A stretch of DNA of 64,000 nt, taken from Blepharisma stoltei ATCC 30299 (taxonomy: Eukaryota; Protista; Ciliophora). Shown here piece after piece: positions 1-61,304 of this stretch (positions are counted from its first letter, which is position 1; each line of letters opens with the position of its first letter). The DNA is taken from assembly GCA_965603825.1 (NCBI GenBank), contig CBFDEM010000001.1:62001-126000 (forward strand), read 5' to 3'. A program made the position numbers and the translations under genes. The notes below the pieces were generated by a model that was not told the DNA's origin, searched no databases, and was given only the letters and a program-made list of their open reading frames with translations.

Positions 1-868
1 CCCAAACTATAGCAGCTGGAATAGAAACTATAAACAAATAAAACAAGTGTTTACTGCGCCAGCATCTAATATCAAGGTTGTCATTGAGTCAATATTCTCC
101 AGAATTTATCTGCTTGCAATTGAATGACCCAAAAATCATTTTGACAATGTTCGGGTGCACGATAAATAGCAAAATAATGCAGGTAGATAGTCGTTCGTAA
201 AATCCTTGAAACTTTTTCGCTTAAGGTCGATAAAAACCCAAATGACCAGAGCAATTAGAGATATTCCGATCGGCATCAGACTCATAAGTATCAGCTTATT
301 GAAATAATATTGGTCTGGGTCACTTTTGCTCGTCTGTAAAAAGCAGTCAAAGGAAAAGGCTTGGTCGCTGACTGACCCAGCGCTGTTTTGTGTTGAAAAG
401 ACTTGAAGGACTAGACTTGGCCAGTTGAGGTTAAAAGTCGTCACAAGCATAACCAGCTGAAGGTAGTTCATAAAGATTTTGATATACACAGAAGTCAGGG
501 ACTTTGGGACAAAGGCAGAGTCTCTTGTAGATTTAACCATAATTGCACAAAGGATAATAAGTGCGATGAAGATCCCAATAATTGCCATACTGTTTGTGGC
601 TTTGTCTGGGCAAGGACTGCAGATGCCAGTGCCTGTCTTAGAGTAGCCATATTCACAAGACTGACACATGTTTCCTTTGTAGCCGTCTGAACACTCGCCT
701 GTGTAGGAGATATTGTCTGGGTTGGTTGAGCCTAAGCACGCATTTGAATTCTGACACTTCCAAAAGACATTTGTGTACTTGTTGTCTCTCCAGTATCCAG
801 ACTTAGGCGCCATTGTGTAGTTTCCATAGCAGATTCCGCCGTCAGGGCAAGCGAGACAAGAGGGGTTC
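1..868 (-). pseudogene. 5'-truncated ciliate-type Cys-rich (CxxC/EGF-like) multi-pass membrane protein; runs off the window edge; frameshift near 190
   Basis: The frame reads ...PSCLACPDGGICYGNYTMAPKSGYWR...C..C.EGY.GNMCQSC...CSPCP, then TM segments (YIKIFMNYLQL...NWP, DCFL). After a frameshift at ~190 it continues LLFIVHPNIVKMIFGSFNC...EY(TGA=W)LNDNLDIRCWRSKH. Upstream of ~868 the frame meets a stop inside receptor-family DNA, so the 5' part is missing. Confidence 0.7.
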
Positions 869-3608
869 TTAGAAAATTCTGATAGTTATTATACATATGA
901 AGGCTTAGCTCTTATAAAGTTTTTAAATTTGGTTCTTGAATGCCCTTTAGGGTCTAGTCCTTTAGACTTGGTTGCATTTTTAGATAAAAATACAGTAGAT
1001 CATCATCCTATATCTAACTTTACTTTACTGAATGTCGAGAGTGGTGAAAAGATTATAGCAGGAAATATTTTTAACGGAAATTTGACCATTTTAAAGTCTT
1101 TAAATTTTCCAGAAGATTCTTCAATAATTCCAAACTCTCCTACTACAGATGTAAATATATGAATTGCAGATGGAACCACAAATCCAGGAGCTGATCCTGA
1201 ACTTTTGGCGACAACTGTGACATATGCAGAATTTTATGCACTAAGCTATTGAAAAAGTATACATGCCTTAGATGGCTTTGAAATAACAGTTACAAATACA
1301 GATTGTGGGGTTACAATATACGATGCAGATTATGCGTATTCCTGTTTTTCTAAATTGCTTGAAACCCCTGGAATTGATTATTTATCCATGGATGGCTATT
1401 GGCTATATTATACATTGAGATATTTCAATTATTCAATGCCTCATATTTCTCCATATGCCCCTTCCAGTGTTACAGAAAATTATACAGCATTTCCTGAATT
1501 TATGACAGTCATAAAAGATGTAGCATTCAACACCCAAGTCATATTAAACCTTGCAGTGATTTTTGGCTGAAAAAATTTTGTGGTAATTTATGACAATGCA
1601 AGTACAGTGATGTATAATTATTTTGTTGCGCAACTTAAAAAATTCAATATGAGGATTGTAAATCCTCCAAAATTGCAACAAATTGATACATATTATACTA
1701 GAAATGACTATCCGAAATGAAAATATTGGTTCGAGGGGTTAATAAAGCTAAGAGCCAGACTTAATGTAGGGTTTTTGACACCTCCTTATTGAATGTATGT
1801 GGTTGAAAGCTTTTATGATGCTGGGATGAGGAGAGGCGATTGAATCTTTTTAGCCAATGCGAGACTTGCTTATTCACTTACATGGGAAACTGATGAAGTT
1901 CAGCGTAAAAAGCTTATTAATTTAATGTATGGAGGAATAGTTATTTCCCAGGCTGAATGGATTGGGGATTATGGACAAATGTTGAGGAATGGCTTTATAA
2001 AAGCTTATATCAATGACACAGATTTTCGCTGTTTAGCATTTGATTCTGCAATGCTACTTCTGCATGGGATAGAATTTACTATACAAAAAGGTCAAAATGT
2101 TAAGGATTATGAAGTAATAAACACTAATATAAGAAAACAGAAATTTACAGGGTGCTCTGGGACAATATCAATTGAGCCAGGAGGTAATCAGAGGAGTCTA
2201 CCCACTATTGGAATTCATAACCTAAAATGGGATGAGAGCTCTGGTAAAATATATGAGGATCTTGTGGGAGAGTACGATTTCAGCAGTGCCCAATTAATCA
2301 CTTTTTATAAGGCTATTGTATGATATGATAACACCACAAATGTGCCGGTTGATATTATAGAGTATGAAAATGGCTGCCCATTTCCAACTAAAATTATTTT
2401 TCGGTCTGATAAAGGCTCTGGAGTTTTATATGGAATTTCTTCTGCATTGATCGTTATTTCGATAATCGAGGCACTTTTTATGTGGAAAAAGTTCTGAAGC
2501 TACCTATGCATTAATAAATTAACGATACAATCTTGGTGCAGTTTGAGGATTATACTTTGATGGCAATAATAGCTATTGATTTTTTTCAATTTCTATCTCA
2601 AGGGCCAGATATAAGTGGATGGAATAAATGGCTGTCCTTATTGTGTACTTATTCACTGATTAATTTTGATAATACAGTTAAGGGAGATGCTTATTGGGTT
2701 TATTTGTATACAGCTATGGGGTTTCCTGCTACTTGATTTTTACAGCCATTTTATTATTTTATAGGTTTAACAATTGCCTAAGAATTTTGCTGCAGCATAT
2801 TAAAAGTCTTTCTTTGCTATTTTTACCTTTAAGTGGAAATATAGCATTTTTACCTATGGTTTCAGTTCTTTTAAGCATGTTTCAATGTGACCAAGGAATT
2901 AGTTCAAATCTTACTGATTCGTTTATAAGGCAAGACTGCAATTCTTATTGTTGAGATAATAAATATATTTTATGAGGAATCCTCTCCATAGCTTCGCTCG
3001 TGACTTATATCCCTCTTTCTTTATATTTCAGACATTATTTTTAAAACATTAATGAAAATACTAATATCAAAACTAAGCCACTTTTTATTATAGAAAAAAC
3101 AATTTTTCAGATTACTATTGTGGTCCTGAATAAAACGATAAAAATTTATGATGAATCTTTTCATGGGCTATGCTGTATTATTCTATTTATTATTTTAATT
3201 TGGCTATGTCATATGCAAAGACCTTATAACTATCATAGAATGAATTTGTGACTGATTATATCATATCTGGCTATTTTATGAAGCTTTATATTGTCAACTT
3301 TGTATTGAATCATAAAATTTGACTCAATAATACTCTGGCTAGCTCTTCAACACTCAGGATTCTTCATATTTATAGCTGTAGGCATAGCGATTCAATGCAA
3401 ATGATGCCCAAGCCTGCTATATACAGAAAAACCAGTAGATATTGCAGTTTTTTTCAAATTTTCATTGGGAAGCAAGATAGCTGCTACAGAAATTAATCAA
3501 ATGAAAAGAACCCTGATGGAGGTTAACAGCTCATCAAAAATGAGAACTTCAATTATTGATTCCCCCTCAATTATTTATAACTCCAAGGCAGATATGATAT
3601 CAGAATAA
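868..3608 (+). pseudogene. Receptor-family copy A (VFT-VFT-9TM): 5'-truncated pseudogene
   Basis: Starts abruptly at the conserved 'LEN(A/S)D.YY.YEGLA' motif. Lesions: compensating indels at ~1380-1410, a frameshift at ~2720 and an in-frame TAA at 3042-3044. The terminal TAA is at 3606-3608. Confidence 0.85.
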
Positions 3609-3649
3609 TTTAAAGATTATTTATGATCAAATTAATATAAAAAATTATT

Positions 3650-3915
3650 ATTATAAGAACTTTTTTCAGATAATTATAGTTGCTATGAATAAAAATATAA
3701 AAGTCCATAATCCCTACAGATTTAATAAAATATTGAAAATGGATGCCCATTTCCAAAACAATATATTCCCCACTCTAAAAAAGGGCTCTGGGGTGTTATA
3801 CGGAATCTCCTTGTCGCTAGGTATCAGAATTGTTTTTCGGATTTTCAATAGGAACTAGAGTTTCAGCTTGCGAAATCAATAAGATGAAAAGGGAGATTGC
3901 TAAAAATAACAACAT
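3650..3915 (+). pseudogene. Patchwork relic of three short receptor-family fragments
   Basis: Pieces resemble TM6 (FQIIIVAMNK), the pre-TM1 linker (ENGCPFP...KGSGVLYGIS) and the C-tail (FSIGTRVSACEINKMKREIA). Confidence 0.65.
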
Positions 3916-4940
3916 CATGCCAGGTTTTGATATTAAAGCTTAAAAATTGATTGAAAAGGCTAACCTCGGGAGACTAATATCTGTAGAGACATTATAAAAA
4001 GCTAGATTATATTGAGTGAGTATCAAAAATCAGAAAAAATGTACATATTTATTATATTTAATCCTATAGCCTGAAATTAAAATTTTATAAGAAAATAGCT
4101 TAGTTTGATTAATTTTACTTTAATCTAAGCTCTGCTCTAATATTCACTTTATTATCAAACTTGTCTTCTATTAATTTTAACTCTAAATATGTTGAAATTC
4201 GCTTATTTCTAAAACACCTAAATCCTCTTATATGTATTTTTACAAATATTTATTCAAATAATTTTCTGCATAAATTTCTTATTGTGCTAGGTATGTAGAG
4301 AATAGCCCCACATGCAAAGCGCAATGAAAAATTTGTGAAAGTTATAACAAAATATTTGAAGATCAATGCAAGCACTAGAATCCTCTTTACAATATTTGAT
4401 AAAATAAGAGATATATAATGCCTATATCTTTATAAATAATTGCTTAAGATGCTCATAAGTTTGTGATGCTAGATATCCTACAAAAGTGCTTAAACTTTAT
4501 TTTTATTTGCATTTAACTTTGATAAAAAAAATGAGAAAAGGCCATCACATAATGAATTTTGGCGAAAGGGAAAATTGTTCAATTGATTTCTTGTATTTAT
4601 AAAAAGAAAAGCACTCAAATATTCGATTTTTAGAAACGTAAAAAAAATTTTAATATATTAATTTTTACAAAAGTATAAGACTGAATTTAACAAAGGATAA
4701 ATTACTCAAAATAAAAAATTATATATCGTTAGATTTTAAAAATATGTGAATGTAAAAATTGATCCCAAACAAATATTAACAAAAATAAAAATGAATCATT
4801 CGGAAGTACGTTTTTTTATATTCTAAAATTTAAAATATAACCAGAGGTTAATACGATTTAAAAAACGCCCTATAGTTTTAACAATACGTACGTTTTATTT
4901 CTTTTTATTAGCTTTGCAGATTTTTAAAGTATGATAATAA

Positions 4941-7900
4941 ATGAAAATCAATTTACTAATCCTATCATTTATCCAGCTCATTCATTGCCAGCTACTTGTG
5001 GATATATTTTATAGCGTTTCAACAGATCTGGAATATAAGAATTCGATAACTTATTCTTTATTAGAAAATTTTTCGGACCAATTTGATATAAAAGAAATTT
5101 TAGTAACACCTGCATGAGGCATCTTAAATTCCGGGCAAAATCCCAATATTATTATAGATATAACTTCGAGTGCTTCCTTATCAGAACTACTCAAAGAATA
5201 TGCTTCAAATAATCAAATAATTCTTGTATCACCTGAGCTTCCAAACTCGTTCAATTATTGGCAATTTTTCACTCATTCTTCGTTAAATAGCCATATAAAA
5301 GCTATCAGCAGTCTGATTTCGTTCCTAAACTGGGAGAATTTTATAATAATTTCAAATAAAGAATACCAAATTTTGGATGATTATTTCTTAACAGAATTTT
5401 CAATTAAAAAAGTTAGCACCTTTTATTTCCCAAATATTGAAAATCAGGATTTAGCTGATTTATTTATAGGGAAAGAAATCAAACCTACAGGAAACAGAAA
5501 TATAATAATTTTAAATCAAGGGAAAGTCGCTGAAAATCTATTAAAAAGTCTCAAACAGAAAAATATTTTAACGAGTGGCTGCGGGATTATTTTAAGCAGC
5601 CAAGGTATTTGAAATTTGAATGAAAATGGAATATTAAGTTACATAGAATCAGGCATAGAAAATGCTACCAATAAATTCAACTATGAAGCGCTTGCAATAG
5701 TAAAATTTTTAAATTTAGTCTTAAAATTTCCAGGCAATTATGATCCATTTGCTTTAAGGGAATTTTTAGAAATAAACACTGCGGATCATTATGCAGTAGC
5801 GAATTTCACTGTAATAAATATTCAAAATGAACAAAAAGTAAAAGTAGGCGAAATTACTGAAGGAATTTTGAATTTTTCAAGTAATCTGACTTTCCCCGGA
5901 AATTCATTGACAATTCCAAACTCTCCGTATACTAATGTCTCAATCTGGATGGGAGATGGCCTAACTAACCCTTTAGGATACCCAGACAGTCCTTATCAAG
6001 CTGTAAAAAACGGAGCGAAGTTCGGTCTTATTTATGCTGAGAGGACTCATTTGCTTGATGGTTTCGAAATTTTAGTGATTCATACAAACTGCGGAGCCGA
6101 AATTTATGACCCGACATATTCATTAAATTGCTTTGCAAAACTAAAAAGCACCCCAGGCGTTGGATTTTTGACATCAACATATCCCTTAATAATTATCGGA
6201 AACCTTATGACGCTGAAATATTTGAATATTTCATTGCCTTTGATATCTGAATATTCCCCGCTTGGCATTTTAGGAGAGAAAGAAATGTTTCCAGATTTCC
6301 TCAGGATGGCTGGAAACGATTATTACCATTGTAACGTTCTAGTCGATCTCATCCTCATTTTTGGATGGAAAAATGTGCTTGTATTTAGCGAAAATTCTAC
6401 TTCTAGCCTACTTACTCATCAATATGTAGTAAATAAACTGGAGGCTGCGAATATAAACATTGTGAATTCACCAGAAGATCGACTGGTCATGGAAAATTAT
6501 AATCACACCCATTTTAATACATACAAAAACTGAATGATAAGGATGAAAGATCTGAAAGTTAGGCCTTGCATAATAAATTTTGCACCTCCGTCAGAATTTT
6601 ATATTATGGAAGATCTCTATGAGGCTGGTTTCAGAAGAGGAGACATCGTCATTTTAGTTCCTAATAGAGTGGCTTTTGCATTTATTACTGAGCCTGATCC
6701 TGTTCAGTTAGCAAAAATGTCAGAAGTTCTTTATGGAGGGATAATTATAAGTGAAGCAGAATGGCTTGGGGATTATGGAAAAACCATTTTATCTGAAATG
6801 AAAAAGGTTTACCCTACTAAAAACTCAGATTTTAGGTGTTTCTCCTTTGATGGTGCTACGTTGCTTTTATATGGAATAAAATTTACTATTGATAGAGGTG
6901 GGAATGTTGAAAATTCTACATTAATAAACAGTAATTTAAGGCAGCAAAAATTTTTAGGCTGCTCCGGTACCATTTCAATTGATCCAGACTCAAATGATAG
7001 ATCCTCAGCAACTATTGGGATATACAATATGAGATATGACAGTGAAGATGGCCTTTTATATGAATATATTGTAGGAAGATACGACCCTGGAAGCCAACAA
7101 TTATTCGCTTTTTATGAAGATATGAATTGGTATGACAATACCACAAATACACCTACAGATAAAATTATTAATGAAAATGGGTGCCCGTTTGAAGATAGCG
7201 AGGTCGAGTATTCGGCAAATGGCGCTGGCATCCTTTATGGGATTTCATTTAGCATATTTGTGACTACTATGATTGTGACATTTTATATATGAAGAAAATG
7301 GTGGATCGTTGATATAAAAGAAATGACTGAAAAAAAATTAATTCAATTCGAAGATTATATAGCGATGCTTATGATTTTTATTGATTTTTTGCAGCTTTTA
7401 TCAGTTGGACCTGATATAAAAAAGTATGATTCTTTTTCTGATATTTTTTCGCACTATGCCTCAATAAATCTTGGCTGACTTACTAAAGGCAAAAATCTAT
7501 GAGTTTTTGCATATGTTTCTATGGGAACTGTTATCATTTGGATCTTTTTCTGCGCAAAGCATATTTTCAAGTTTGGGGAAAAATCAAATAACGTAATATG
7601 GGAATATAGCAGAATTTTATCCAAAATGTCATTACCGATTATAGGAAATATGCTATTTTTGCCTATAGTTTCAATTTTTTTAAATGTAATTCAATGTGAT
7701 CAACAAATAGGGCCAGAAATAAGCCAAACTTTTGTAAGAAACGACTGCTCAACGTTTTGTTGGCATGATTCTCATATAATATGGGCAACTCTTTCCATGA
7801 TTTGTTTGATTTTTTATCTCCCTCTAGCAATTTATTTTCGGCCTTTTTGGGATATTTCTCATGAATATATAAATATAAAAACTCGGCCGCTATTTTTGAT

Positions 7901-8552
7901 GCTGAAAAGTGTATTTCAAGTGAGTGTAATAGTTCTTAACAAAACAGTGAAAACTTTTAGTCAATCATTGCATGGACTTTTATACAATATTTTATTAAGC
8001 GTTTTTCTATATATCTGCTATAAAAAGAAGCCTTATAATGACAGTCGCATGAACCTTTGGCAAATTATTTCTTATTTTGCAATTTTATGAAGTGTTACTC
8101 TTTCTTCTTTATATTGGTTATTACCTGAAAAATCAGCTAAAATCTGACTATTATCACAATTTATTGGCTGAATCTTTTTGATTGCTATTGGGCTTTATCT
8201 ACAGAAAAAATATTGCCCGACTATGCTTTTCAATGAGACAGGTGTACAAATTGGCAAATTCTTTAAATTTTCATTAGGAAGCTCAATTCCAGCAGCTGAA
8301 ATTAATAAAGACATCAAAGAAGCAGGCCTTAAATACAAACTTCATTCTAGCAATTCACATCTGTATGGGAAAATTTCAGATTCTACTAGACACGTGATTT
8401 ATAATAAGAAGGAAAGTAAGATTAAAATTGATAATCACTCAGATTCATCAAGGTGTGTGTTTATGAGTGATACAACACATCGGCCTAATGTTGAGCATAT
8501 GCCAGAAACTATCAGATGGATTAATCTTAAGATTGAAGACTTAGAAGGTTAA
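4941..8552 (+). CDS. Receptor-family copy B, 1203 aa (signal peptide, tandem ANF/PBP1-like modules, ~9 TM)
   Basis: ATG at 4941. All supplied ORF pieces (5373, 5616, 6534, 7521, 8178) share one frame and are separated only by TGA at conserved Trp positions. Ends at TAA. Confidence 0.9.
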
Positions 8553-8825: not shown

Positions 8826-11800
8826 TTAGTCAGCAGCTTTAAATCGATTTGTGGTATCAATTATAGGTGCAATCTTTGAGGAACCTGAATTGCTATCAAA
8901 TATAAGCTGACATTCCTTATTATGAGCACCGTATTTAGTAGAACTTGAAATTTTCTCATATATATAGTTATTACTACAATGCGATTTATATTTTATTCCT
9001 ACTTCTTTGATATCTTTATTAATTTCAGATGCTGGGATCGAGCTTCCTAGCATAAATTTAATAAATTTTACAATTTCTACACCTTGCTGATTGAATAGCA
9101 TACTTGGACAATATTTACTCTGTAGGTATAGCCCAATAGCAATTAATAAAATTCAGCCAATAACTTGTGGAAGTAGTCAAAGATTTGCTAATTTTGTATG
9201 TAAAAGATAATATAATGAAGAAATAGAAACACTCCATAAAATGGCGAAATAAGAAATAATTTGCCAAAGGTTCATGCGACTGTCGTTATATGGTTTTTTT
9301 TTGTAGCAGATATATATAAAAATAATTAATAAAATATTGTATAAAAGTCCATGCAATGATTGGCTAAAAGTTTTCACTGTTTTGTTAAGAACGATTACAC
9401 TCACCTGGAATACACTTTTCAGCATCAAAAATAGTGGCAGAGTTTTTATATTTATATTTTCATTAGAAAGACCCCAAAAAGGCTTAAAATAAATAGCTAG
9501 AGGGATATAAAAGACTAAGCAAAGCCCAGAAAGAATTGCCAATATGCTATGAGAGCCATGCCAACAAAATGTCGAACAGTCATTTCTTACAAAGCTTTGT
9601 CTCGGTTCTGGCCCTATTTGTTGGTCACACTGAGTTACATTTAAAAAAACTGAAATCATAGGCAAAAAAAGGATATTCCCTACTATTGGCAAAGACGCTT
9701 TAAATAAAACTTTACTAAATTCACATAAAATGTTATTTGAGCTTTCCCCAAACTTAAAAATGTGTTTTAAACAAAAAATAGCTCATATAAAAACAATTAC
9801 TATTGAGCAATACACAAGAAATCACATATTATTACCTTTCCAATCAAAATCTACTGACGCATAATGTGAAAAGATATTGAAATAAGTCTCATATATATCA
9901 GGTCCAGCTGACAAAAGCTGCAAAAAATCAATAAAAATCATAATTATTGCTATATAATCGTCGAATTGAATTAATTTTTTTTCAATCATTATTTCTATAT
10001 CAATCAGCCATCATTTTCTCCATATATAAAAAGTCTCAATCATAGTAGCTATCACAATGCTAAACGAAATCCCATATAAGATACCAGTGCCATTTGGTGA
10101 ATATTCAGCTTCATCTTTATCAAATGGACAGTCATTCTCATTGATAATCACATCAGTTGGTATATTCGTTGTATTATCATATCAATTAAAACCTTCATAA
10201 AATGCTATTAATTGTTGGCTTCCTGGGTCGTATCTTCCTACAATATATTCATGCAAAACGCCATCTCCATTATATCTCAGATTATATATCCCAATTGTCT
10301 GCACACTTCTATCATTAGAATCTTGCCCAATAGAAACCGTCCCTGAGCAGCCTAAAAATTTTTGCTGCCTTAAATTACTGTTCATTAAGACAGGATCTTC
10401 TACATTTTCTCCTTTTTCAATGGTATATTTAATCCCATACAAAAGTAATTGTGCTGCATCAAATTAAAGCACTTAAATTCTGGCACATTAGTTGGATAGA
10501 CCTTTATTAAATCCGAATAAACTGCTTTACCGTAATCTCCAAGCCATTCGGCTTCACTTATAATTACTCCTCCATATAGCATTTCTGAAAGTTTTGCTAT
10601 TTGCTTTTCAGGTTGATATATAAAGGCAAAAGCAATTCTATTGGGGATGAAAAATACTATATCCCCTCTTCTAAACCCAGCATCATACAAATCCTCAATT
10701 AAATAAAACTCTCCTGGAGGTGCAAAATTTATGATGCAAGGCCTTACCATTAGATTTTTCATTTTTATCATTCAGTCTTTATATTTATGATAATTTTCAT
10801 GGCTATAGCCTTCCATAACAATCCTGTCGTCTTGGGAGTTGGCAATATTTATATTTGAGGATTCTAATTTTTCTACAATATACTGGTGAGTGAGTAAAGC
10901 AGCTGTTGAGTTTTCACTAATTAGCAGCACATTTTTCCACCCAAAAATAAGCATGAGATCGGCCAGCACGTTAACATGGTAATAGTCATTTCCAGCCATC
11001 CTCATTAGGCTTGGAAAAAGCTCTTTATCTCCTAGAAAACCAGTTGGAGAAAACTCAGTTATCGAAGGGATTGAAATATTTAAATATTGCATTGAATTAA
11101 GGTTTCCAATGATCACTAATGGATATAATGATGTCAAATATCCAACGCCAGGTGTGCTTTTTAGCTTTGAATAGCAATTTATTGAAAATGTAGGATCATA
11201 GACGTCTGCCCCACAGTCTGTATGAATCACAGAAATTTCAAAACCTTCGAGGAAATGATTGCTCTTAGCCAAATCAAGAGCGAATTTTGCTCCAATTTTA
11301 CTAGTAGTATAAGAGCTGTCTGGAAATCCAGGGTTCGTAACGCCATCTGCCATTCAGATTGGGATATTTGTATGAGGAGAGTTTGGGATTATCAATGAAT
11401 TTCCTGGAAAAGTCAAATTATTAGATAAATATAAAATTCCTTTAGAGACTTCTCCTACTTCTATTTTTTGCTCATTTTGAATATTTATTATAGTGAAATT
11501 CGCAGCTGCATGATGATTAACTGTATTTATTTCTAAAAATTCCCTTAAAACCAAATTATCATAATTGCCAGAGTATTTTAGCACATGATTTAAAAATCTT
11601 ATAAAAGCGAGACTTTCGTAATTATAGTAGTCGTCCGCATTTTCTAACCCTGATTCTATATAAGTAATGGCTCCATTTCCATATAACCCTCATGAGCCTT
11701 CATTTCCTACAACAACTCCAGTTCCATTAATAAGCAAATTGTATTTTTCTAAACTTTTCAATAACATTTTTGAGCTTTCCCCATGATTTAATATGACAAT

Positions 11801-12361
11801 ATTTCTTATCCCACTTGCTTTAACTACTTTTCTTATAAATAAATCTGAATTACTTTTAGAATTGGTGTTTGAAAAATAGAACCAGCGGTAATCCCTATCA
11901 TACAAATTATTGAAAATTTCATCTTTATCATTGTAAATCTCATCAGAAATTACTATAAAAGTAGTCCAATTTAAATAAGAAATAATGCTTGGCAAAGCTT
12001 TAGCTTGATCTTCTCACGAGCTATGAGTAAAAAATTCCCATTTTGAATATATCCCGGTCGGCTTATTAATTTCAGCTATGATCGACTGATTCTCCTCAGA
12101 AAATTCTTTTAATGATTTTGATAATGATGTGCTAAAAGTAATGTCTAAAATTATATCTGGGCTGTTCATAAGCTTTTCAATATCCCAAATGCTCTCAATT
12201 AAAACTAAATTAAACGAGAATTGGTTTGGAAATTTTTTTTGAAGTAAAACTGCTAAATTTGAGGTCAAATTTGAATTTGTGAAAGAGCTAAAGCATATAT
12301 CGACAGTTAGTTGAGATACTGTGAGAGCAATTAAGCAAAATACAAGATTTATAGCCCGCAT
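8826..12361 (-). CDS. Receptor-family copy C, ~1178 aa; one -1 nt frameshift at ~10460 (T-run: sequencing error or recent pseudogene)
   Basis: Pieces from 12361 to 10460 share one frame and pieces from 10442 to 8826 share another. Restoring one T gives the conserved CF.FDAA motif. Confidence 0.8.
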
Positions 12362-12779: not shown

Positions 12780-13969
12780 ATCAATTTTATATATCTTATA
12801 TAAAATCACCACTGAGAAACACAGGATCGCCAAAGTCTCCAAAATCTGTGTTTGTAACTGTTATTTCAAAGCCATCTAAGGCATGTGTGATTTTAAATAG
12901 CTTAGTGAACAAAACCCTGCATATGCTACAGTTGTTGCCAAAAGTTCAGGATCAGCTCCTGGATTTGTTGTTCCATCTGCAATTCATATATTTACATACG
13001 TATTAGGAAAGTTTAGAATTATTGAAGAATTTTCTGGAAAATTTAAAGACTTTAAAATGGTCAAATTTCGTTAAAATATTTCCTGCTGTAATTTTTTCAC
13101 CATTCTTGACATTCAATAAATTAAAGTTAGATATAGGATGATGATCAACTGTATTTTTATCTAAAATGGCAACCAATCTAAAGGACTAGACCCTGAAAGG
13201 TATTCAAGAACCAAATTTAAAAATTTTATAAGTGCTAAGCCTTCATAACTATAATAACTACCAGCATTTTCTAATCCTGATTCTGTATAAGAAATGACTC
13301 CATTTCCATATAAATTTCATGAGCTCATTTCCTATCAATACTCCAGTCCCATTAGTAAGCAAATTGTGCTCTTCTAAACTCTGCAACATCATTTTCATGC
13401 TTTGTCCTTTATTCAAATTCACAATATTTCTAATCCCAGTCGGCTGAATTTGTTTTCCTATAAATAGATCTGCGGAATTTTTATTATTGCTATTTGAGAA
13501 ATAAAATCATTGGAATCATTTTTGGAAAATAATTATCTTGAATATAAATTTCATCAGAAATCACTATAAAAATTGTCCAATTTAAATACGAAAGGACACT
13601 TGATAAAGCTTCAAATTGGTTTTCCCATGAATTATGAGTAAAAAATTCCCAATTGGAATATATACCTGCTGGCTTACTAGTTTTAACTAAAATTATATGT
13701 TTTTCTTCCACAAGCTGCATTATTGATTTTAATAAAGAGTTACTAAAATTCATATCAAAAAATATATCTGGAATATCCACAAAATTTTCAATATCTCAAA
13801 TGTTTCCTATGGGAACTAAATTAAATAAAAATTGATCTTAAAATTTTGTCGCACCAAAGCCGTAAAATTTGAAGCTAGTTGTGAATCTTTAAAAGAGCTT
13901 AGAATTATATCAACAATAAATTGAGATTTTGTAAGAATAATTGAGAGATATAATTCATAAACCCTACAT
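12780..13969 (-). pseudogene. Receptor-family copy D: 5' portion only, degraded
   Basis: ATG is followed directly by TAG and there are several frameshifts. 12840-13290 is a close inverted match to copy A 870-1310 (GTTNPGADPELLATTV). Confidence 0.8.
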
Positions 13970-18393: not shown

Positions 18394-18489
18394 TTTTGAT
18401 TTTTTTTATTTTAATAAAAATATCAGAACCGCTCAAGGAAGATTTTATGTGCTTATAATATTTTTTAAAATTTATTCATGATAAAGGAA

Positions 18490-48203: not shown

Positions 48204-48614
48204 GATAAAGTTTTTGGACGAGAAAAAATAGTTTTAATAGCAATTTCTTTTAATTAGGCTCTTAAATTTCAAATTTAAAAAAGACAAGCAAAGCAGTTAT
48301 ATTTAATAAATGGTGTTGTTCTTATTCAACTTATATATAAATGCTATATTGTTAGACTAAAACAATATGAAAATACTGATATGAGCAAATTTTAGCTTAA
48401 ATTTTATTTGAAACATAGCTTCTTTCATAAAGTTTTAATAATTTCTGGTACGATACATTGATTATCAAACATTTACTTTATGTAAAAAAAAGTCCGTTGA
48501 TTATACTAAAAAATAATTTTTATCATTGGTTGACCCGATTCTTTATTCCCAATAAACCCCTATAATTTAAAAAATTACTGAGGAAAATTTAAAAAGTTAA
48601 TGAGATGAATAAAA

Positions 48615-51600
48615 ATGAAATCCGAACTAATTTATCTTTTAATTTTCCAGATCGTCCAATCTCAACTTCTCGTAGACTTGTATTATAGCTCAGATACAGA
48701 TCTCGAATTTAAGTCATATATGCATGAAAAGCTCAATGAAAATTATCAAAGTCAAATAGAAGTCAGAGAAAGCCTTATAAACTCGGCAATTGATTTGAAT
48801 AATTTTACAAAAAGTCCAAATGTTATTGTAAATTTAACTTTCAGCACTTCAATTTTAGCATATATAAAAGATTTTACAGTTGAAAATAATATAATTTTGA
48901 TTTTAATTCAGGAGTTTTCTAGCTCTTATAACGACTGGCAATTTTTTAGCCATTTATCCCAGCAGGACCATAAAACTGCTCTTAGCTGTTTAGTCTCTTT
49001 TTTTAATTGAGACCAATTTTTAATAATTTCGAGCAATTTAGATGAGAACTTTAACGACATATTCTCAGTTAAAAAATTTGATGTTTTCCATTTTTCAGAA
49101 ACCAGTGATAAAAATCTCGTTGATTTATTTGTTGGTAAAAAAATAAAACCGGCAGGGATCAGGAATTTGGTCATTTTAAATCAGGGAGAAACTACTGATA
49201 AATTATTGAAAAGCCTTGTGGATAAAAGTATTTTCCAAAGCGGAAGCGGGATTATTTTAGGAAGCCGCAGCACATGGAATGCAATGTTAGATGGAGTAGT
49301 GAGTTATACTGAGTCAGGCTTAGAAAATGCCACTGATAATTATAGCTATGAAGCTTTAGCAATTGTAAAAATATTGGACTTGATACTTAGCTTTTCAGAT
49401 TATTCTAATGCTTTAGCTCTTAGATCATTTTTAGAGAGGAATACAGTCAATCATTATTTACCTGGAAATTTTACTGTAATAAATATCCAAAATTCCCAAA
49501 AAGTCAATATTGGTAGCATTTCTCAAGGCTCCTTAACATTTGCTAGCAATCCAATATTTCCAGGAAATTCCACCCTTATTCCCAATTCCCCATATACAAA
49601 TGTCTCCCTATGAATTGGAGATGGGGCCACAAATCCTCTTGGAGTTCCTGATAGTTCTTTCACTGTAGTCAAGGATGGTGCGAAATATGCCTTTAAGACT
49701 GCAGAAGACACCCATTTTCTTGATGGTTTTAAAATTGTCCTTGTCCATGTAGACTGTGGAGCCGAAGCATACGATCCGACATTTTCTCTAAATTGTTTTA
49801 AAAAATTAGTAAATGTGCCAGGAATTGTGCATCTGGTGCATCCATTCGCAACTACTGCCTTAGGGGACATTATTTCAATGCGTGCACTAAATATTACAAT
49901 GCCTATTGTAGCTGATCACGTAACCTTCGGAGCCCTTTCAAATAAAACAGAATACCCTTTATTTGTAAAAATAGCTGGGAATGATTTTTATAGGAATAGC
50001 GTTTTAGCTGACTTAGTCGTCATTTTTGGGTGGAAAAATGTAATTATAGTTCCAGAAAATAATACTCCCAGTATACAAACTTGTGCTTATCTAAAAAAGC
50101 GCATGGAAGCAGCCAATGTTAATGTTGTAAATAAGCTTGAAGATACGATGATTATGGATAATTACAACCACAATTATTTTGATGAGCATAAAGATAAAAT
50201 GATTGGCCTGCTAAAGTACAAAACTAGACCGATTATTTTAGCTGTTACTCCTCCATCTATTTTTTATTATACAGAAGACTTATACAATGTAGGAATTCGT
50301 CGGGGAGACCTGATTATTATGGTCCCGAGTAAAATTGCGTTTGCATATACAACTATGCCTATTAAGACTATGCTGGATAAAATGTCAGAACTTTTATATG
50401 GAGGAATTACTACATGTGAAGCTGAGTGAATTGGAGAATTTGGCCAAAATCAACTTAAAGGATTTAAAAAAGCTTACCCATACATTAATGATGATTTCAG
50501 GTGTTTTTCACTTGATTCAGGGTGGCTGGTACTAAATGCGCTGAAATTTACAATTGATCAAGGAGAAGATATTTATGATCCTTATGTGTTTAACACTCAC
50601 TTAAGACAGCAAAGGTTTTTAGGCTGCTCCGGGATTGTTTCTATTAGTTCTCAGTCGAATGATAGGAATTCAGCACCGATTGGGATTAATAATTTTAGAT
50701 ATGACAGTGTAAATGATATTTTATATGAAAAAATGATAGGGGCTTATGATCAAGGAAGTTTACAGCTGTTTACGTTTTATGAAGACATGAATTGGTATGA
50801 TAATACAACAAATACACCACCAGATATTGTAAAAAGTGAAAATGGCTGTCCGTTTAAGGACAGTCAAGTTGAGTACTCAGTAAAAGGTGCTGGAATGTTT
50901 TATGGAATTGCTTTTGGAATTACTATAAATACAATGTTTTTGACTTTTTATATATTAAAAAGGTGGTGGAATTTAGAAGTTAATGCAATAACTGAGAAAA
51001 GGCAAATTCAATTTGAAGATTACATAGCAATGGTCATCATTTTAGTAGATTTTTTGCAGTTTTTATCAGTTGGGCCAGATATACAGAATTATGATATTTT
51101 TACTTATACACTAACTCATATTGCTTCTATCAATTTTATGAGTGAAGGGAAATACCTATGAATCCATTTATATTTTGCTATAGGTGGCCTTTGTGCATGG
51201 CTTTTGTTTGGGATAACTCATATTTTTCGTATTGGAGAAAATTTAAATAATAGCTTTATCGATTGTTGAAAGATCTTATCGAAATTATCATTACCTATTC
51301 TTGGAAATGCACTATTTTTACCAATTGTGTCAGTATTTTTAAATGTAATTCAATGCGATCAACAAATTGGCTCAAAGTTGACCGACACTTTTGTGAGAAA
51401 AGATTGCAACACTTTTTGCTGAAAAGACGAGCATATTTTATGGGCAACCCTCTCTATAATTTGCTTAATTCTATATTTGCCTTTTGCAATTTATTTAAAG
51501 CCTCATTGGGACTTCTATGAAGATTTTATCAATATAAAAACGCGACCACTTTTTTTGATGGCGAAAAGTGTTTTCCAAGTCAGCATTATTGCTCTCAATA

Positions 51601-52085
51601 AAACAGTAAAGCCGCAAAGCCAAGCCCTTCATGGACTCTTCTACAGTGTTTTATTATGTATTTTAATATTTATTTGTATGAAAAAGAAGCCTTATAATGA
51701 AAGCCGCATGAACCTTTGGCAAATAATTTCATATTTAGCCATTTTGTGGAGTGTAGGCTTGTCTTCTTTATATTGAATAATTCCAATAAGGATGCCGGAT
51801 GCTTGAATATTATCAGAATATTTAGGCTGAATTTTTTTAATTATTGTTGGGCTTTATATTCAGAAAAATTATTGCCCAAGTATGCTTTTTAATGAGCCTG
51901 GAATAAATATTGTAAAACTGTTTAGATTTTCTTTAGGAAAATCAATAGAAGCTTCTGAAATCAATAAAGACCTTAAAGAAAAAAGAAATAAGTATAGCAT
52001 GCACTTAAGCACCTCTAGAAATTTTCTCAGTAGTTCTGCACATCATACTATTTATGGAAAAGAATTAAAAGTTTTTGAAGTTTAA
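48615..52085 (+). CDS. Receptor-family copy M, 1156 aa
   Basis: All ORF pieces share one frame with TGA=W. Ends at TAA. Confidence 0.9.
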
Positions 52086-53210: not shown

Positions 53211-56200
53211 ATGATTTTGGCAATATTGCTTATACATATAGCTTCATGCTCGCCACTAGTTATTATTGCAATAAGCCAGCATAGCAGCCAAAGCCTGATA
53301 AACAAAATAATTGACTCTTTCCAAAGCTCCAGTTTGAATTTCATAGAAGTAAAATTATCAAAAATAATCCAAGAAGATTCTCTTGACAGCTTTATGGGAG
53401 AAAATAGCATTATAATCGATGCCACTTACGATATCTTTTTACAAGTAAAGCTTTCTGAAGCTGCAAAATTAAATTCTGCTGTACATATAATAGTTCGAGA
53501 GCCATTTGAAAAATTTTCTGACTGGGACTTTTTTACACTGCTTCCTATGCGAGCTCACTATGAAGCTATAAGTAGCTTTTTACTTTATCTAAATTGGTAC
53601 CAATATAATTTGATTTATAGTGATTCAGCGAATGCAATAAAGCTCAATAGTCTATTTTATTGAGAAATAAATAAAAAGCAGGACTTTTGCTATTCAAATG
53701 ATAGAAACGAAGATGCCACTGATTATTTTATTGGAAAAGAGGTAAAAACAACAGGATTAAAAAATGCTGTTATTATAAATGAAGGAGAAGGAGCAAAGAA
53801 GTTAATAAGGTCATTCATAAAAAATAAAATTTACATTAAAAACGCAGGAATAGTATTATGAAGCAAAGGCATATGAGGGGCAGAAGAAGAAGGACTTATA
53901 ATTATAGTGCAAGAGGGTCTTGAATTTGTAAAAAATTCAGATGAATATGAAGCTGCTTCAGTGTTAAATTTTCTTGAAAAAATATATACCCTGTCGGAAT
54001 CAACTTTTGTAATTAAAAAATACTTAGAATCAGAAAGAGGAAACTATAGATTTTCTATTGTCAATATCCAAAACGCCAAGAGAGTAATAATTGGAACCAT
54101 TTTTAATGGCCAAGTTAATCTATTCAAAACTCCACTATTTCCTGGAAACACATATGATTTTCCTGATTCAAGCAATTCAAAGATAAAAATATCGATTTCT
54201 GATGGTATTACAAATTATGACGGGGTTGTTCACAGAGGCACATGAATTATAAGGATTCCAACGCTATATGCGATCAATTATGCGAACAAAACAAACCTAA
54301 TTAAAAATTTTTCATTAGAACTGCATGAAACTGATTGCAGCGCAGAGTATTATGAACACGATTTTTCATATAATTGCTTTTTAAATCAGAAAGAAAAGTT
54401 TGGAGTCATTTTCATACCGTCAATTCATGATGAAGTATGCTTAGGGACCATTAGTGATTTCAGAGAAATGGGATTAAAAATTCCTATACTTGGGGATTTT
54501 TGCCTTTCTCCTGCTCTTAATGACCAAAGCCAATTCCCTGAATTTGCCCGAGTGGTAAAAGGTTTTGAGCTCCATTCCGCGACAATGGCCCACATGATGA
54601 GGATTTTTGGCTGGAAAAATGTGGTTGTCATGTATGAAAACACGACCTTAGGAATTACCCTATACAAAGGCTTTATGAATGTAGCAAATGTAAATGGGAT
54701 AAAGGTCCTAAATGACGAAGATAAAAGAATGATCAAGGCTTCTTATTCTGGTAAAGATTTTGAAGAATATAAAGGCCATCTTACCCATGCGATCCAAACA
54801 AATGGTAGAATATTTGCTCTTTTCGTGTTTGTTGATCTTTCGAGCCATTTCTATTTAACATCCCATTTATATGATTTAGGACTAAGAAGGGGCGATGCTA
54901 TTTTTTTGTTTTACCAGACTATTTCGTGGTTTCCCTACTATGCAGTTGGCCTAGAAGCAGAAGTTATTTCTAAATGTAAAGAGCTATATTATGGGTCGCT
55001 AACTTTTTTCCAAGCTGAGTGAATTGGAGATTTTGGGAAGCAAGCTTATGAAGGCATCAAAAAATGATGGGGTAGTTCTCCTGTGTCCTATCATTGCCAC
55101 GCTTTTAACACTGGGTGGCTTGCCATAAATGCGATTAATACTTTAATCCAGTTTGGAGAAGATTACACAGACCGTGATACTCTTCTAAAATCAATCAGGA
55201 GGCAAAAGATCATCAGCTGCACCGGAAAATTAGTAATGTCACCTACTGCAAATGAGCCTGGAGAGATGATCGTGGGGATTAACAACCTGATACCTAATTC
55301 CACAACTGGGGTATGGGAAGATTTTCCAGTCGGCTCTTATTCAATTATGAGAAACCCGGTGCTGACTTTTGACCAAAATATTATTTGGCCTGATGGTGGA
55401 TCTAATCCTCCTAGTGACATCAGAGTAAATTCACTTAATTGCCCATTTTCCTATAAGCAGATTCAAGACTCTGACAAAGGGGAAGCTATATATTATAGTA
55501 TCATTGCATTTTGGACTACTTTAGGTTTGGCAACATCATTAATTTATATGTCAAAGTATTGGAGCTCATCATTTCCTATTATTCAGGATAAAAGAGAAAT
55601 AAAATTCCGAGATTGATTAGCTGCTTTTAGTTTATTGATAGAGACCTTACAACTTTTAACTTTAAGTCCTGAATTTATTTATTCAAAAATTTCTAATGGT
55701 TTTGATTATATATCAGGAAATTTAGCAAATACCACAACATATGACAGTAAAATTTTCTGACCAGGAATTTATACAGCCTTAATAGTCTGCTTGGTGACGC
55801 TAACTTTTAACCTGTTATTAATTTTTAAAATTGAAGAAAAAAGCAGACTCTCTTTTTTTGTAGTAGCTTGCGGGGTTTCAAAAGAGCTGCTGCCACATAT
55901 TAGCAACTTATTCTTCATCCCTGTCATAAATTCTCTGTTTTCTCTATTCCGATGCACAAAAGGAACAAGTCTGAATGTCCTTGACTCATTTTTATATGGC
56001 GACTGCAATTATTTCTGCTGGCAAGATTTACATTTACTTTTTGCAGTTCTTGCTTTAATTTCCTTGCTTTTTTTTATTCCTAGTGCAATCTTATGGAGAC
56101 CTTATTATGAATCTCTTAGCTCTGATAAAAATATTTATTGCAATGAGCATTATTTAATCGCAAAAAGCACCATTCAAATAGTTGCGATTACTTTAAAATC

Positions 56201-56645
56201 AACTATAGGGAATTACAGTAATTCCTTACATGGCCTTTTGTACATTTTCTGTCTCACGCTTTTTTTAGCTTATTCGATTTTCTATAAACCTTATAATTAT
56301 AATAGAATGAACTTATGAGCCCTACTTTCAATTCTGGCAGTAATGTGGAGCTCAATTCTATCGTCTATTTATTCATTAGCTAACAGCAGCATCTTTATAT
56401 GAGTACCTTTATTAATCTTTGGGTGACTATGTTTAGCTGTTTTTGGGTATGCCTTTCAGGAAAGATTTTATCCGAGCTTTTTGTACTCTGTGCATGGAAA
56501 GGATATCAGCTTGCTTTTCAAGTTTGAATTTTCAACAAGAATTACACTGGATGAAGTTTTTGGGGCTGTGAAGAATAAATATTCAATGATAGACTCCAGC
56601 AGTCGATTTGACTTGGCTAATAGGGATTTGAGCTCTATAAGTTAG
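53211..56645 (+). CDS. Receptor-family copy N, a divergent member, 1144 aa
   Basis: Pieces 53211, 53907, 54468, 55083 and 55791 share one frame with TGA=W and end at TAG 56643-56645. It retains IFGWKNV, RRGD, QAEW, CPF, DC...CW..H and KPYNYNRMNLW. Confidence 0.85.
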
Positions 56646-56934
56646 GATAGCAGGTAAATAAATTTATAACTATAGGGAAATAAATGGATTTGCTAAAATA
56701 AATAATTTGTGAAAATTAGAGCTTAGCGATTATTTAAAATTATTTGAAGCTCCCTGTTGTTTTTTCTTAAGTTTTTTTTCTTCCAATCTTAATTCCTTCG
56801 CCTCCTACTGTATATTTCAGTCCCTTTCGCCAGATTGGAGAGCAATGGGATGCTCACCATGCCACGCGCCAAATAAGATTGCACTTACAGAAAATACTAA
56901 AAACGAATTTTCTGGAGCATTATCTATGAGTTCT

Positions 56935-57026
56935 TATATTAAAGAGTTTTTGGCTGAAAACCATATAATTCTGACTTTAATTCAAGACCTCCCGAGTGCT
57001 TATAATGACCTGCATTATTTTAGTTA
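56935..57026 (+). pseudogene. Tail end of an N-terminal receptor relic; start of a duplicated spacer
   Basis: YIKEFLAENHIILTLIQDLPSAYND matches 48110-48203, and the downstream spacer matches 48205-48615. Confidence 0.7.
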
Positions 57027-57851: not shown

Positions 57852-60800
57852 ATGAAATCTGGACTAATTTATTCTTTAATTTTCCAGATCGTCCAATCTC
57901 AACTTCTAGTAGACTTATATTATAGTGCAGATACAGATCTTAAGCTAAAGTCACATGTACATGATAAAATCAATGCAAATTATCAAAATCAGGTAGAAGT
58001 CAGAGAAAGCCTGGTAAACTCGGCAATTGATTTAAATCATTTTACAAAAATTCCAAATATTATTGTCGATTTAACTTTCAGTACCTCAATTTTAGCATAT
58101 ATAAAAGAGTTTACAGTTGAAAATCATATAATTTTGATTTTAATTAAGGAGTTTTCTAGCTCTTATAATGATTGACAATTCTTTAGCCATTCATCCCAGC
58201 AGTACCATAAAGCCGCTCTTAGCTGCTTAGTCTCTTTTTTTAATTGGGACCAATTTTTAATAATTTCGAGCAATTTGGATGAGAACTATAACGGTGTATT
58301 CTCAGTTAAAAAATTCAATGATTTCCATTTTTCAGAGATCAGTGATGAAAATCTAGTTGATTTATTTGTTGGTAAAAAAATTAAACCGACAGGAATCAGG
58401 AATTTAGTCATTTTAAATCAGGGAGAAACTACTAATAAGTTATTGAAAAGCCTTGTGAATAAAAGTATTTTCCAAAGCGGAAGTGGGATTATTTTAGGAA
58501 GTCGTAGCATATGGAATACAATATTAGATGGAGTAGTGGGCTATACTGAGTCAGGCTTAGAAAATGCTACTGATAATTATAGCTATGAAGCTTTAGCAAT
58601 TGCAAAAATGTTGGATTTGATACTTAGCTTTTCAGATTATTCTAATGCTTTAGCTCTTAGATCATTTTTAGAGAGGAATACAGTCAATCATTATTTACCT
58701 GGAAATTTTACTGTAATAAATATCCAAAATTCCCAAAAAGTCAATATTGGTAGCATTTCTCAAGGCTCCTTAGCATTTGCTAGCAATCCAATATTTCCAG
58801 GAAATTCCACCCTTATTCCCAATTCCCCATATACAAATGTCTCCCTGTGAATTGGAGATGGAGCCACAAATCCTCTTGGAGTTCCTGACAGTCCTTTCAC
58901 TGCAGCCAAAGACGGTGCTAAATATGCCTTTAAGACTGCAGAAGACACCCATTTTCTTGATGGCTTTAAAATTGACCTTGTCCATGTAGACTGTGGAGCC
59001 GAAGCATACGAGCCGACATTTTCTCTAAATTGTTTTAAAAAATTAGTAAATGTGCCAGGAATTGTGCATCTAGTGCATCCATTCGCAACTACTGCCTTAG
59101 GCGACATCATTTCAATGCGTGCACTAAATATTACAATACCTATTGTAGCTGATCACGTAAGCTTTGGAGTCCTTTCAAATAAAACAGAATACCCTTTATT
59201 TGTAAAAATAGCTGGGAATGATTTTTATAGGAATAGTGTTTTAGCTGACCTAGTCGTTATTTTTGGGTGGAAAAATGTCATTATAATTCCAGAAAATAAT
59301 ACTCCCAGTATACAAACTTGTGCTTATCTAAAAAAGCGTATGGAAGCTGCCAATGTCAAAGTGGTAAATAACCTTGAAAAAACGATGATTATGGATAATT
59401 ACAATCACAATTATTTTGATGAGCATAAAGATTTAATGCTTGGCCTGCTAAAGTACAAAACTCGACCGATTATTTTAGCTGTGACTCCTCCGTCTATTTT
59501 TTATTTTTTAGAAGACTTATACAATGTAGGAATTCGTCGGGGAGACCTGATTATTATGGTCCCGAGTAAAACTGCGTTTTTATATACAACTATACCTATT
59601 AAGCCTATGCTGGATAAAATGTCAGAACTTTTATATGGCGGAATTACTACATGTGAAGCTGAGTGGATTGGAGAATTTGGCCAAAATCAACTTAAAGGAT
59701 TTAAAAAAGTTTACCCATACATTAATGATGATTTCAGATGTTTTTCACTTGATTCAGGGTGGCTGGTACTAAATGCGCTGAAATTTACAATTGATCAAGG
59801 AGAAGATATTTATGATCCTTATTTGTTTAACATTCGCTTAAGACAGCAAAGGTTTTTAGGCTGCTCCGGGATAGTTTCTATTAGTTCTCAGTCGAATGAT
59901 AGGAATTCAGCACCGATTGGGATTAATAATTTTAGATATGACAGTGTAAATGATATTTTATATGAAAAAATGATAGCATCTTATGATCAAGGAAGTTTAC
60001 AGCTGTTTACGATTTATGATGACATGAATTGGTATGATAATACCACAAATACACCATCAGATATTGTAAAAAGTGAAAATGACTGTCCGTTTAAGGATAG
60101 TCAAATTGAATACTCAGCAAAAGGCGCTGGAATGTTCTATGGAATTGCTTTTGGAATTACTATAAATACAATGTTTTTGACTTTTTATATATGAAAAAGG
60201 TGGTGGAATTTAGAAATTCAAGTATTAACTGAGCCAAGGCAAATTCAATTTGAAGATTACATAGCAATGGCCATTATTTTAGTAGATTTTTTGCAGTTTT
60301 TATCAGTTGGACCAGAGATAAAGAATTATGATATTTTTACTTATACACTCACTCATTTTGCTTCTATTACTTTTATGACTGAAGGGAAATACCTATGAAT
60401 CCATTTATATTTTGCTATAGGTGGCCTTTGTGCATGGCTTTTGTTTGGGATAACTCATATTTTTCGTATTGGAGAAAATTTGCATAATAGCTTTATTGAT
60501 TGTTGAAAGATCTTATCAAAACTCTCATTGCCTATTCTTGGAAATGCACTGTTTTTACCAATTGTGTCAGTATTTTTAAATGTTATTCAATGCGACCAAC
60601 AAATTGGCTCAAAGTTGACCGAAACTTTTGTGAGAAAAGACTGTAACACTTTTTGCTGAAAAGATTCCCATATTTTATGGGCAACCCTCTCTATAATTTG
60701 CTTAATTCTATATTTGCCTTTTGCAATTTATTTAAAGCCTCATTGGGACTTCTATGAAGATTTTATCAATATAAAAACGCGTCCACTTTTTTTGATGGCG

Positions 60801-61304
60801 AAAAGTGTTTTCCAAGTCAGTATTATTGTTCTCAATAAAACAGTAAAGCCACAAAGCCAAGCCCTTCATGGACTCTTCTACAGTGTTTTATTATGTATTT
60901 TAATATTTATTTGTATGAAAAAAAAGCCTTATAATGAAAGCCGCATGAACCTTTGGCAAATAATTTCATATTTAGCCATTTTATGAAGCGTGGTTTTGTC
61001 TTCTTTATATTGAATAATTCCAACAAGGATGCCAGATGCTTGAATATTATCAGAATATTTAGGCTGAATTTTTTTATTTATTATTGGGCTTTATATTCAG
61101 AAAAATTATTGCCTAAGCATGCTTTTTAATGAACCTGGAATAAATATTGTAAAACTGTTTAGATTTTCTTTAGGTAAATCTATAGAAGCTTCTGAAATCA
61201 ACAAAGATCTTGAAGAAAAAAGAAATAAGTATAGCATGCACTTAAGTACCTCTAGAAATTTTCTCAGTAGCTCTGCACATCAAGCATTTATGGAAAAGAA
61301 TTAA
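57852..61304 (+). CDS. Receptor-family copy O, 1150 aa (a 1-nt deletion alters only the last few residues)
   Basis: All ORF pieces share one frame with TGA=W. The tail reads QAFMEKN* instead of ..IYGKELKVFEV*. Confidence 0.88.

Follow-up and report, generated by a model that had tools for sequence, protein, structure and literature searches.

An array of candidate receptors with two Venus-flytrap modules on a nine-helix membrane domain in the somatic genome of Blepharisma stoltei

The stretch of DNA analysed here (the window) is 64,000 nucleotides of the somatic genome of the ciliate Blepharisma stoltei ATCC 30299 (contig CBFDEM010000001.1, positions 62,001-126,000; coordinates below are window positions unless another contig is named), and it contains a tandem array of genes for a protein with two Venus-flytrap modules and a nine-helix membrane domain. 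The published genome of this strain comprises 41 Mbp, reads UGA as tryptophan and has tiny introns (PMC9942806). With TGA read as tryptophan, the open reading frames (ORFs) of at least 150 amino acids (aa) in the window sum to 15,421 aa, versus 7,937 aa with the standard code. Of the codes tried, among them the standard code and TAA/TAG as glutamine, just the one with TGA as tryptophan opens the genes. It gives eight uninterrupted ORFs of 1137-1203 aa, all on the plus strand, and tblastn with one copy as query (genetic code 4) revealed 19 loci of one protein family between 854 and 61316, which are eight intact copies, two near-intact copies on the minus strand, three large pseudogenes and six short relics. 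An earlier reading of these letters alone, without database searches (the sequence-only reading), had placed about 19 copies or relics of one protein of about 1,150 aa at 868-61304, and its first and last copies match those found here. The array genes have no introns, so that no spliced model is required. The 19 loci are as follows, with the basis of each in brackets.

854-3620 (+): N-terminally truncated pseudogene, residues 232-1159, two frame changes (tblastn high-scoring pairs in frames 2, 1 and 3)
4941-8552 (+): intact copy, 1203 aa, 54-57% identity to the core group (ORF with TGA as tryptophan)
8829-12361 (-): near-intact copy, loss of one nucleotide in a T run near 10463, split in two in the annotation (tblastn, sequence)
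12817-13810 (-): relic, residues 55-390 (tblastn)
14152-14352 (+): short membrane-domain relic (tblastn, E 2e-4)
14830-18405 (-): near-intact copy, one in-frame TAA at 16441-16443 (tblastn, sequence)
18514-20298 (+): relic, C-terminal third, broken frames (tblastn)
21211-24385 (+): full-length pseudogene, at least seven frame changes (tblastn)
25494-28907 (+): intact copy, 1137 aa, 37-41% identity to the others (ORF)
30138-33620 (+): intact copy, 1160 aa (ORF)
34487-37966 (+): intact reference copy, 1159 aa, equal to P0001 (ORF, identity to annotation)
38698-39049 (+): short relics, N-terminal and membrane-domain pieces (tblastn)
39600-43079 (+): intact copy, 1159 aa (ORF)
43942-47077 (+): pseudogene, frame changes, residues 801-1001 deleted (tblastn)
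47882-48201 (+): N-terminal relic (tblastn)
48600-52085 (+): intact copy, 1161 aa, 91% identity to 57852-61304 (ORF)
53211-56645 (+): intact divergent copy, 1144 aa, 28-30% identity to the others (ORF)
56923-57024 (+): N-terminal relic (tblastn)
57852-61304 (+): intact copy, 1150 aa (ORF)

Identity among the intact copies ranges from 28 to 91%, which indicates that the array contains both old and recent duplicates. The ratio of nonsynonymous to synonymous substitution rates (dN/dS, Nei-Gojobori) was 0.14-0.27 for seven pairs, and it was similar across module 1, module 2 and the membrane domain. The intact copies are thus maintained genes, under purifying selection in every domain.

Database proteins identical or close to the window ORFs carry the annotation 'Blepharisma stoltei', and the annotated protein P0001 is exactly identical to the ORF at 34487-37963. 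P0001 was the query of the full-length searches, while earlier searches had used stretches between TGA codons. The UniProt label of the family is merely 'Receptor ligand binding region domain-containing protein'. Each protein consists of a signal peptide, two flytrap modules, nine transmembrane (TM) helices and a cytosolic tail; module 2 is followed by a short linker with an invariant cysteine, a nine-helix domain of about 340 residues and a tail of about 60 residues. In P0001 these parts are located as follows.

34487-34537 (+): predicted signal peptide, cleavable-looking
34538-35521 (+): flytrap module 1
35522-36718 (+): flytrap module 2
36719-37786 (+): nine-helix domain
37787-37963 (+): cytosolic tail

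In Pfam scans of eight full-length members, the only domain recognised was ANF_receptor (PF01094). Module 2 scored 48.2 bits on PF01094 in a piece from the window and 40.7-92.2 bits in full-length relatives (cut-off 25.4), in accordance with the ANF_receptor/periplasmic-binding-protein type I identity that the sequence-only reading had given it, while module 1 stayed below the cut-off (17.1 bits, E 0.003). Family profiles were built from 60 members of an exhaustive HMMER search, which gave 348 hits and about 100 full-length clusters at 50% identity. Against the PDB, the module 1 profile matched the amino-terminal domain of GluN1 (E 1.4e-13) in two stretches spanning both lobes, and the module 2 profile matched the flytraps of TAS1R, GABA-B, mGlu and AtGLR3.4 (E 1e-20 to 1e-16), the best structural matches of module 2 being class C flytraps. 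The two modules also aligned with each other (hhalign, 97%, E 5e-11), which bears out the claim that module 1 is a degenerate flytrap. The bilobed alpha/beta fold of solved flytraps was found, the flytrap hinge and core motifs are conserved, and the motifs listed in the sequence-only reading proved to be real and conserved over the 60 members. The outer module resembles the amino-terminal domain of ionotropic glutamate receptors (iGluRs), and the inner one resembles the ligand-binding flytraps of class C G protein-coupled receptors (GPCRs), GABA-B, plant glutamate receptor-like proteins (GLRs) and LivJ/K. We conclude with high confidence that each protein carries two flytraps.

The same Pfam scans of the eight full-length members detected no kinase or cyclase domain and no NCD3G Cys-rich linker domain, and no iGluR S1/S2 or M1-M4 pore domain (PF10613, PF00060) was detected in the full-length members or the membrane domains, as had been claimed earlier for S1/S2, kinase and cyclase domains. 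A weak DUF7087 match in a piece from the window (E 0.006) was not reproduced genome-wide and was dropped. Among the three Pfam models that the sequence-only reading had named for checking, PF01094 matched module 2 above its cut-off, and PF00003 and PF06011 matched nothing in the window.

The membrane domain has nine hydrophobic segments by hydropathy, and the same nine are long helices in an AlphaFold model of residues 745-1159 (pLDDT 91, pTM 0.87), in agreement with the approximately nine segments counted earlier. In the same model, a beta-hairpin separates helices 4 and 5, and a C-terminal helix lies in the cytosol. Because the ectodomain lies outside, the hairpin and three invariant cysteines are placed on the extracellular side, and the KPYN..R..N motif and the tail in the cytosol. 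Five positions are invariant in the 60 members (C1 in the CPF motif before TM1, D58, C170, C187 and C191) and three are nearly so (Q71 in the D/N-F/Y-LQ motif of TM2, H196, and R287 beside the KPYN motif). Four invariant cysteines are thus present in 60/60 members: a linker cysteine and three at the TM4-5 hairpin, within it or next to it. The linker cysteine is residue 745 of P0001, and Cys 931 lies in its hairpin. A Cys-rich sister family of the same genome has just two of those cysteines, flanking the hairpin, so that a linker-hairpin disulfide specific to the flytrap family is plausible. On the cytosolic side, KPYN..R..N between TM7 and TM8 and an LF.F.F helix after TM9 are conserved.

No Pfam model matched the membrane domain in the 60 members, and the membrane-domain profile had no sequence match in the PDB. 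Foldseek and VIA-wide structure searches with the membrane model returned noise only, with no GPCR or transporter fold. For PF00003 (7tm_3), there were three weak loci genome-wide (best 37 bits, with internal TAA stops), none of them in the window, and no match in the 60 members. The lack of a 7tm_3 match together with the nine helices means that the membrane part is not a class C GPCR domain; it is neither a 7TM GPCR domain nor an iGluR pore.

Judged from profile comparisons and predicted structures, the membrane module is likely homologous, as a divergent relative, to the PF06011-type (TRP-like) domain of fungal Flc and Pkd2 proteins, an affinity that the sequence-only reading had suggested as a possibility. 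Three independent lines of evidence point the same way. In ESM Atlas shape searches, the model matched an Ephrin_rec_like/PF06011 cluster (TM-score 0.58 over 305 residues; 11% of members carry PF06011), a PF06011 cluster (TM-score 0.44/0.54; 42% of members carry PF06011) and eukaryotic clusters from Heterolobosea and Ciliophora (TM-score 0.60 and 0.56); a PF06011 cluster also came up in an Atlas feature search (0.85), as no more than a lead. In a search of the 41,464,486-base assembly (G000; 64 contigs, as in all genome-wide searches here) with the PF06011 profile, at least 25 loci resembled PF06011 and had Cys-rich or beta-helix ectodomains. One Blepharisma group passes the PF06011 cut-off (33.8 bits), and a second group, of Cys-rich multi-TM proteins, reaches E 7e-5 to 8e-4 over that same region of the PF06011 model. 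Finally, the membrane profile of the flytrap family aligned by hhalign with 14 Cys-rich multi-TM paralogs from Blepharisma (86%, E 4.9e-6). With a low mact setting, this alignment is collinear over 353 columns, and it pairs DFLQ with NYLQ, C..DC...CW...H with C..CW...H and KPYN with QPY..LN. With 3 or 6 paralogs the alignment was too thin (23% and 1.5%), and it became informative with 14. Reversing the template raised the E-value to 0.34, and 40 within-block shuffles that kept the hydropathy profile and block order scored 16.2 +/- 2.4 (maximum 22.2) versus 51.2 for the real alignment (z 14.5). These shuffles replaced a permutation of 20-column blocks, which is an uninformative control as homologous blocks stay intact.

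Several observations weigh against this homology or against what might be drawn from it. None of the 60 membrane domains matched PF06011 at E <= 1, and the 25 genomic PF06011 matches all fall outside the flytrap genes of the window; with no direct PF06011 score, the link runs through an intermediate family and predicted structures. The PF06011-passing group aligned with the flytrap-family profile at noise level, and only weakly with the intermediate Cys-rich group (hhalign, 34%, E 4e-4). A TM-score of 0.58 and a probability of 86% are good but not decisive, and no PF06011 protein with a solved structure was found for comparison. Nor is it settled that PF06011 proteins form pores: Flc proteins are described as flavin carriers, and the Pkd2 papers say 'putative' channel (bioRxiv 10.1101/2022.08.11.503631).

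In Schizosaccharomyces pombe, the predicted layout of Pkd2 comprises a signal peptide, an extracellular immunoglobulin (Ig)-like domain, a nine-helix transmembrane domain of 405 residues and a cytosolic tail, and Trp663 and Trp1322 have the same layout (bioRxiv 10.1101/2022.08.11.503631). Pkd2 made cell-free and placed in vesicles passes Ca2+ upon membrane stretch (PMC9727806), and relatives of Flc1 are tied to calcium homeostasis and flavin transport (PMC9600462). The Blepharisma proteins look like a Pkd2-type chassis whose ectodomain has been replaced by two flytraps. Other tandem families of the genome (G000:C43:500-542 kb, C39, C35 and C30; L002-L026) have Cys-rich or beta-helix ectodomains, the latter with an 'NNSA.YGG' repeat, on a membrane domain of the same nine-helix kind. 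The module thus appears to be a general receptor chassis in Blepharisma.

Genome-wide, the membrane profile detected at least 102 membrane domains, all with E below 1e-108 (scored out of 300 candidates), and PF01094 had at least 106 matches (out of 231 candidates), many in tandem runs. The lineage expansion proposed from the window therefore extends over the genome. Given at least 106 ANF_receptor matches versus three weak 7tm_3 loci, flytraps in B. stoltei act mainly via the nine-helix module. Canonical class C GPCRs are nearly absent from the genome and flytraps are abundant. The best genomic PF01094 match (139 bits) is at G000:C23:146940-148862 (+), in an open frame of 1177 aa without TGA; just upstream lies another ANF match, and the product may be a double-flytrap protein that is less diverged or of a different kind.

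Of 30 representative clusters of the family, B. stoltei accounts for 11, and all others come from metagenomes or SRA assemblies. When the membrane profile, the membrane region of P0001 and the metagenomic member P0070 served as queries in word-indexed homologue searches, the matches were proteins of Blepharisma or metagenomes only. Three metagenomic members (L027, L028 and L029) lie on eukaryotic contigs that are dense in genes, among them genes of intraflagellar-transport type, and that have long ORFs in the standard code. This indicates that other ciliated, uncultured eukaryotes also have the family, and that TGA is not a sense codon in them or is at least unused in these genes. These contigs come from activated sludge and other metagenomes, and L028 (10001-17562 of an SRR25018408 contig) has two convergent family copies. 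No description of the two-flytrap/nine-helix architecture was found in literature searches for Blepharisma ANF_receptor, PF06011 with PF01094, and ciliate Venus flytrap, and the word 'receptor' is absent from the main text of the B. stoltei genome paper (PMC9942806). The novelty is an undescribed, highly amplified combination of known domains. In line with the sequence-only reading, the flytrap fold is present, 7tm_3 is unmatched and no characterised family was found.

Within the array, an N-terminal relic (47882-48201 and 56923-57024) lies ahead of each member of the 91% pair at 48600-52085 and 57852-61304, and the most divergent copy (53211-56645) sits between the two members, an arrangement which suggests that a segmental duplication recently enclosed an old resident. 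The raw sequence shows one more deletion relic at about 3720-3960 (+), which is missing from the tblastn list; in it, the linker and TM1 start ('ENGCPFP...KGSGVLYGIS') is nearly directly fused to the C-terminal tail ('...EINKMKREI...'). The left edge of the array is bordered by a gene of the Cys-rich sister family.

109-885 (-): truncated neighbour gene, Cys-rich ectodomain and PF06011-like membrane domain (sister family, NYLQL motif in TM2)

This gene has no N-terminal part and stands head to head against the flytrap copy that starts at 854 (+) without its first approximately 231 residues; its remainder lies beyond the left edge of the window and contains a frame change (L001 7648-8885). The contact of the two at 854-885 has the look of a rearrangement junction from which both genes emerged truncated. 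To the right of the array, the gene at 62003-63828 (-) is unrelated to the family; its N-terminal part is rich in coiled coil, and it has Kelch repeats (Kelch_1, E 1.8e-8). It comprises two ORFs in different frames that overlap at 62491-62569, which could reflect a tiny frame-shifting intron or a real break.

Compared with known systems, the family is closest in layout to the fungal PF06011 proteins (S. pombe Pkd2, Trp663 and Trp1322; Saccharomyces cerevisiae Flc1-3; Aspergillus nidulans TrpR), with which it shares the type-I order of signal peptide, ligand-binding-type ectodomain, nine-helix domain (about 400 residues) and tail, and a distant profile and predicted-fold similarity of the membrane domain. 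The fungal proteins differ in having an Ig/ML-like lipid-binding ectodomain instead of two flytraps and 1-4 copies versus more than 100 in Blepharisma, whose membrane domain is undetected by the PF06011 hidden Markov model and has an extra invariant cysteine pair (linker and TM4-5 hairpin). The Cys-rich and beta-helix proteins of Blepharisma (G000:C39:609434 and C35:515869; window 109-885) have a homologous nine-helix module with (D/N)(F/Y)LQ in TM2, C..CW..H after TM4 and (K/Q)PY..N before TM8, and are interspersed with the flytrap family on the same contig. However, their ectodomain is entirely different, without a flytrap, and they give sub-threshold PF06011 scores where the flytrap family gives none. 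Class C GPCRs (mGlu, GABA-B, CaSR, TAS1R) have the same arrangement of ectodomain over membrane domain, but the Blepharisma family lacks NCD3G and 7tm_3, has nine helices of another fold and carries an extra distal flytrap. iGluRs and plant GLRs likewise stack two extracellular bilobed layers above the membrane domain, while in Blepharisma the second layer is of periplasmic-binding-protein type I, not the type II S1/S2, and there is no M1-M4 pore (PF00060, PF10613). Natriuretic-peptide receptors and receptor guanylyl cyclases also have an ANF_receptor ectodomain on a type-I membrane protein, but the single-pass TM, kinase-homology and cyclase domains of those receptors are absent from the Blepharisma family.

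These comparisons bear on what the proteins might do. A class C GPCR of the canonical kind, with a 7TM domain too diverged for Pfam to recognise, would fit the class C-like structure of module 2, but it is refuted for practical purposes by nine helices rather than seven, by the failure of NCD3G and 7tm_3 to match any of the 60 members, by the top class C chain in Foldseek (E 0.73, TM-score 0.13) and by the positive homology to another membrane family. A rather better, though unlikely, candidate among receptors is a conformational transducer that is not a channel, in which the nine-helix module would signal through its conserved intracellular loops and C-terminal helix to kinases, cyclases, G proteins or separate Ca2+ channels as possible partners, a functional analogue of class C GPCRs. 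The conserved cytosolic motifs KPYN..R..N and LF.F.F are consistent with such a role, as is the structurally unproven pore of PF06011 proteins, Pkd2 being called a putative channel (bioRxiv 10.1101/2022.08.11.503631). On the other hand, the tail has no recognisable effector or docking domain in the Pfam scan, structure searches gave no GPCR fold similarity above noise, and reconstituted Pkd2 conducts Ca2+ (PMC9727806).

It is distinctly unlikely that the proteins are nutrient transceptors or transporters, in effect a eukaryotic fusion of a substrate-binding protein and a permease, in which a LivJ/K-like flytrap would hand amino acids or small nutrients to a carrier membrane module. Relatives in metagenomes are annotated as 'ABC-type branched-chain amino acid transport substrate-binding protein', and Flc proteins were first described as flavin carriers, Flc1 being described as a regulator of flavin transport and calcium (PMC9600462). 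Nevertheless, more than 100 diverged tandem paralogs with many pseudogenes make up a chemoreceptor birth-and-death pattern, and the membrane model has no similarity to any transporter fold. Large arrays with pseudogenes and relics would also suit a variable surface coat, adhesion or self/non-self recognition (of mating partners or prey, for example) with flytraps as protein-binding modules, all the more as other Blepharisma families put Cys-rich or beta-helix ectodomains on the same membrane module. This role is highly improbable in view of a dN/dS of 0.14-0.27, with no diversifying selection at the domain level, and of the conserved flytrap hinge and core motifs.

The array almost certainly belongs to a real, functional receptor family. 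We favour, with some reservation, the interpretation that the window holds part of a large family of type-I surface receptors, amplified in tandem, with a predicted mechanism that leads from ligand to cation permeability. A small ligand would bind in the cleft of module 2, and module 1 would be a modulatory or assembly (dimerising) domain, as in iGluRs. Closure of the cleft might pass via the linker to the extracellular Cys-rich TM4-TM5 hairpin, perhaps through the family-specific disulfide from linker cysteine to hairpin, and the membrane module would then alter the permeability to cations, probably Ca2+, which would steer ciliary beating and behaviour. A chemosensory role is fairly probable, and direct gating of a channel by the ligand is less likely than not. 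The most far-reaching version is doubtful: it would make these proteins a third independent means, after class C GPCRs and iGluRs, of coupling flytraps to the membrane, with ligand-gated Ca2+-permeable channels on a Pkd2/Flc scaffold as the main chemoreceptor repertoire of heterotrichs.

Gamone 2, a mating pheromone of Blepharisma, is a tryptophan-derived small molecule of the kind bound by flytraps, and one or more members of the family might be receptors for these pheromones. Blepharisma pheromone receptors are still termed 'putative receptors' (PMC10892320). The chemosensory and mating behaviour of ciliates is rich and driven by Ca2+ and membrane potential, and the chemoreceptors are largely unknown; the family provides more than 100 candidate receptors with a recognisable ligand-binding domain. 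As the fungal relatives of the membrane module are implicated in Ca2+ entry, coupling of ligand to Ca2+ is directly testable. If the proposed mechanism is true, the PF06011 'TRP-like' domain would gain a natural ligand-controlled form for testing pore identity, and a third type of membrane machinery would be known to carry the flytrap sensor.

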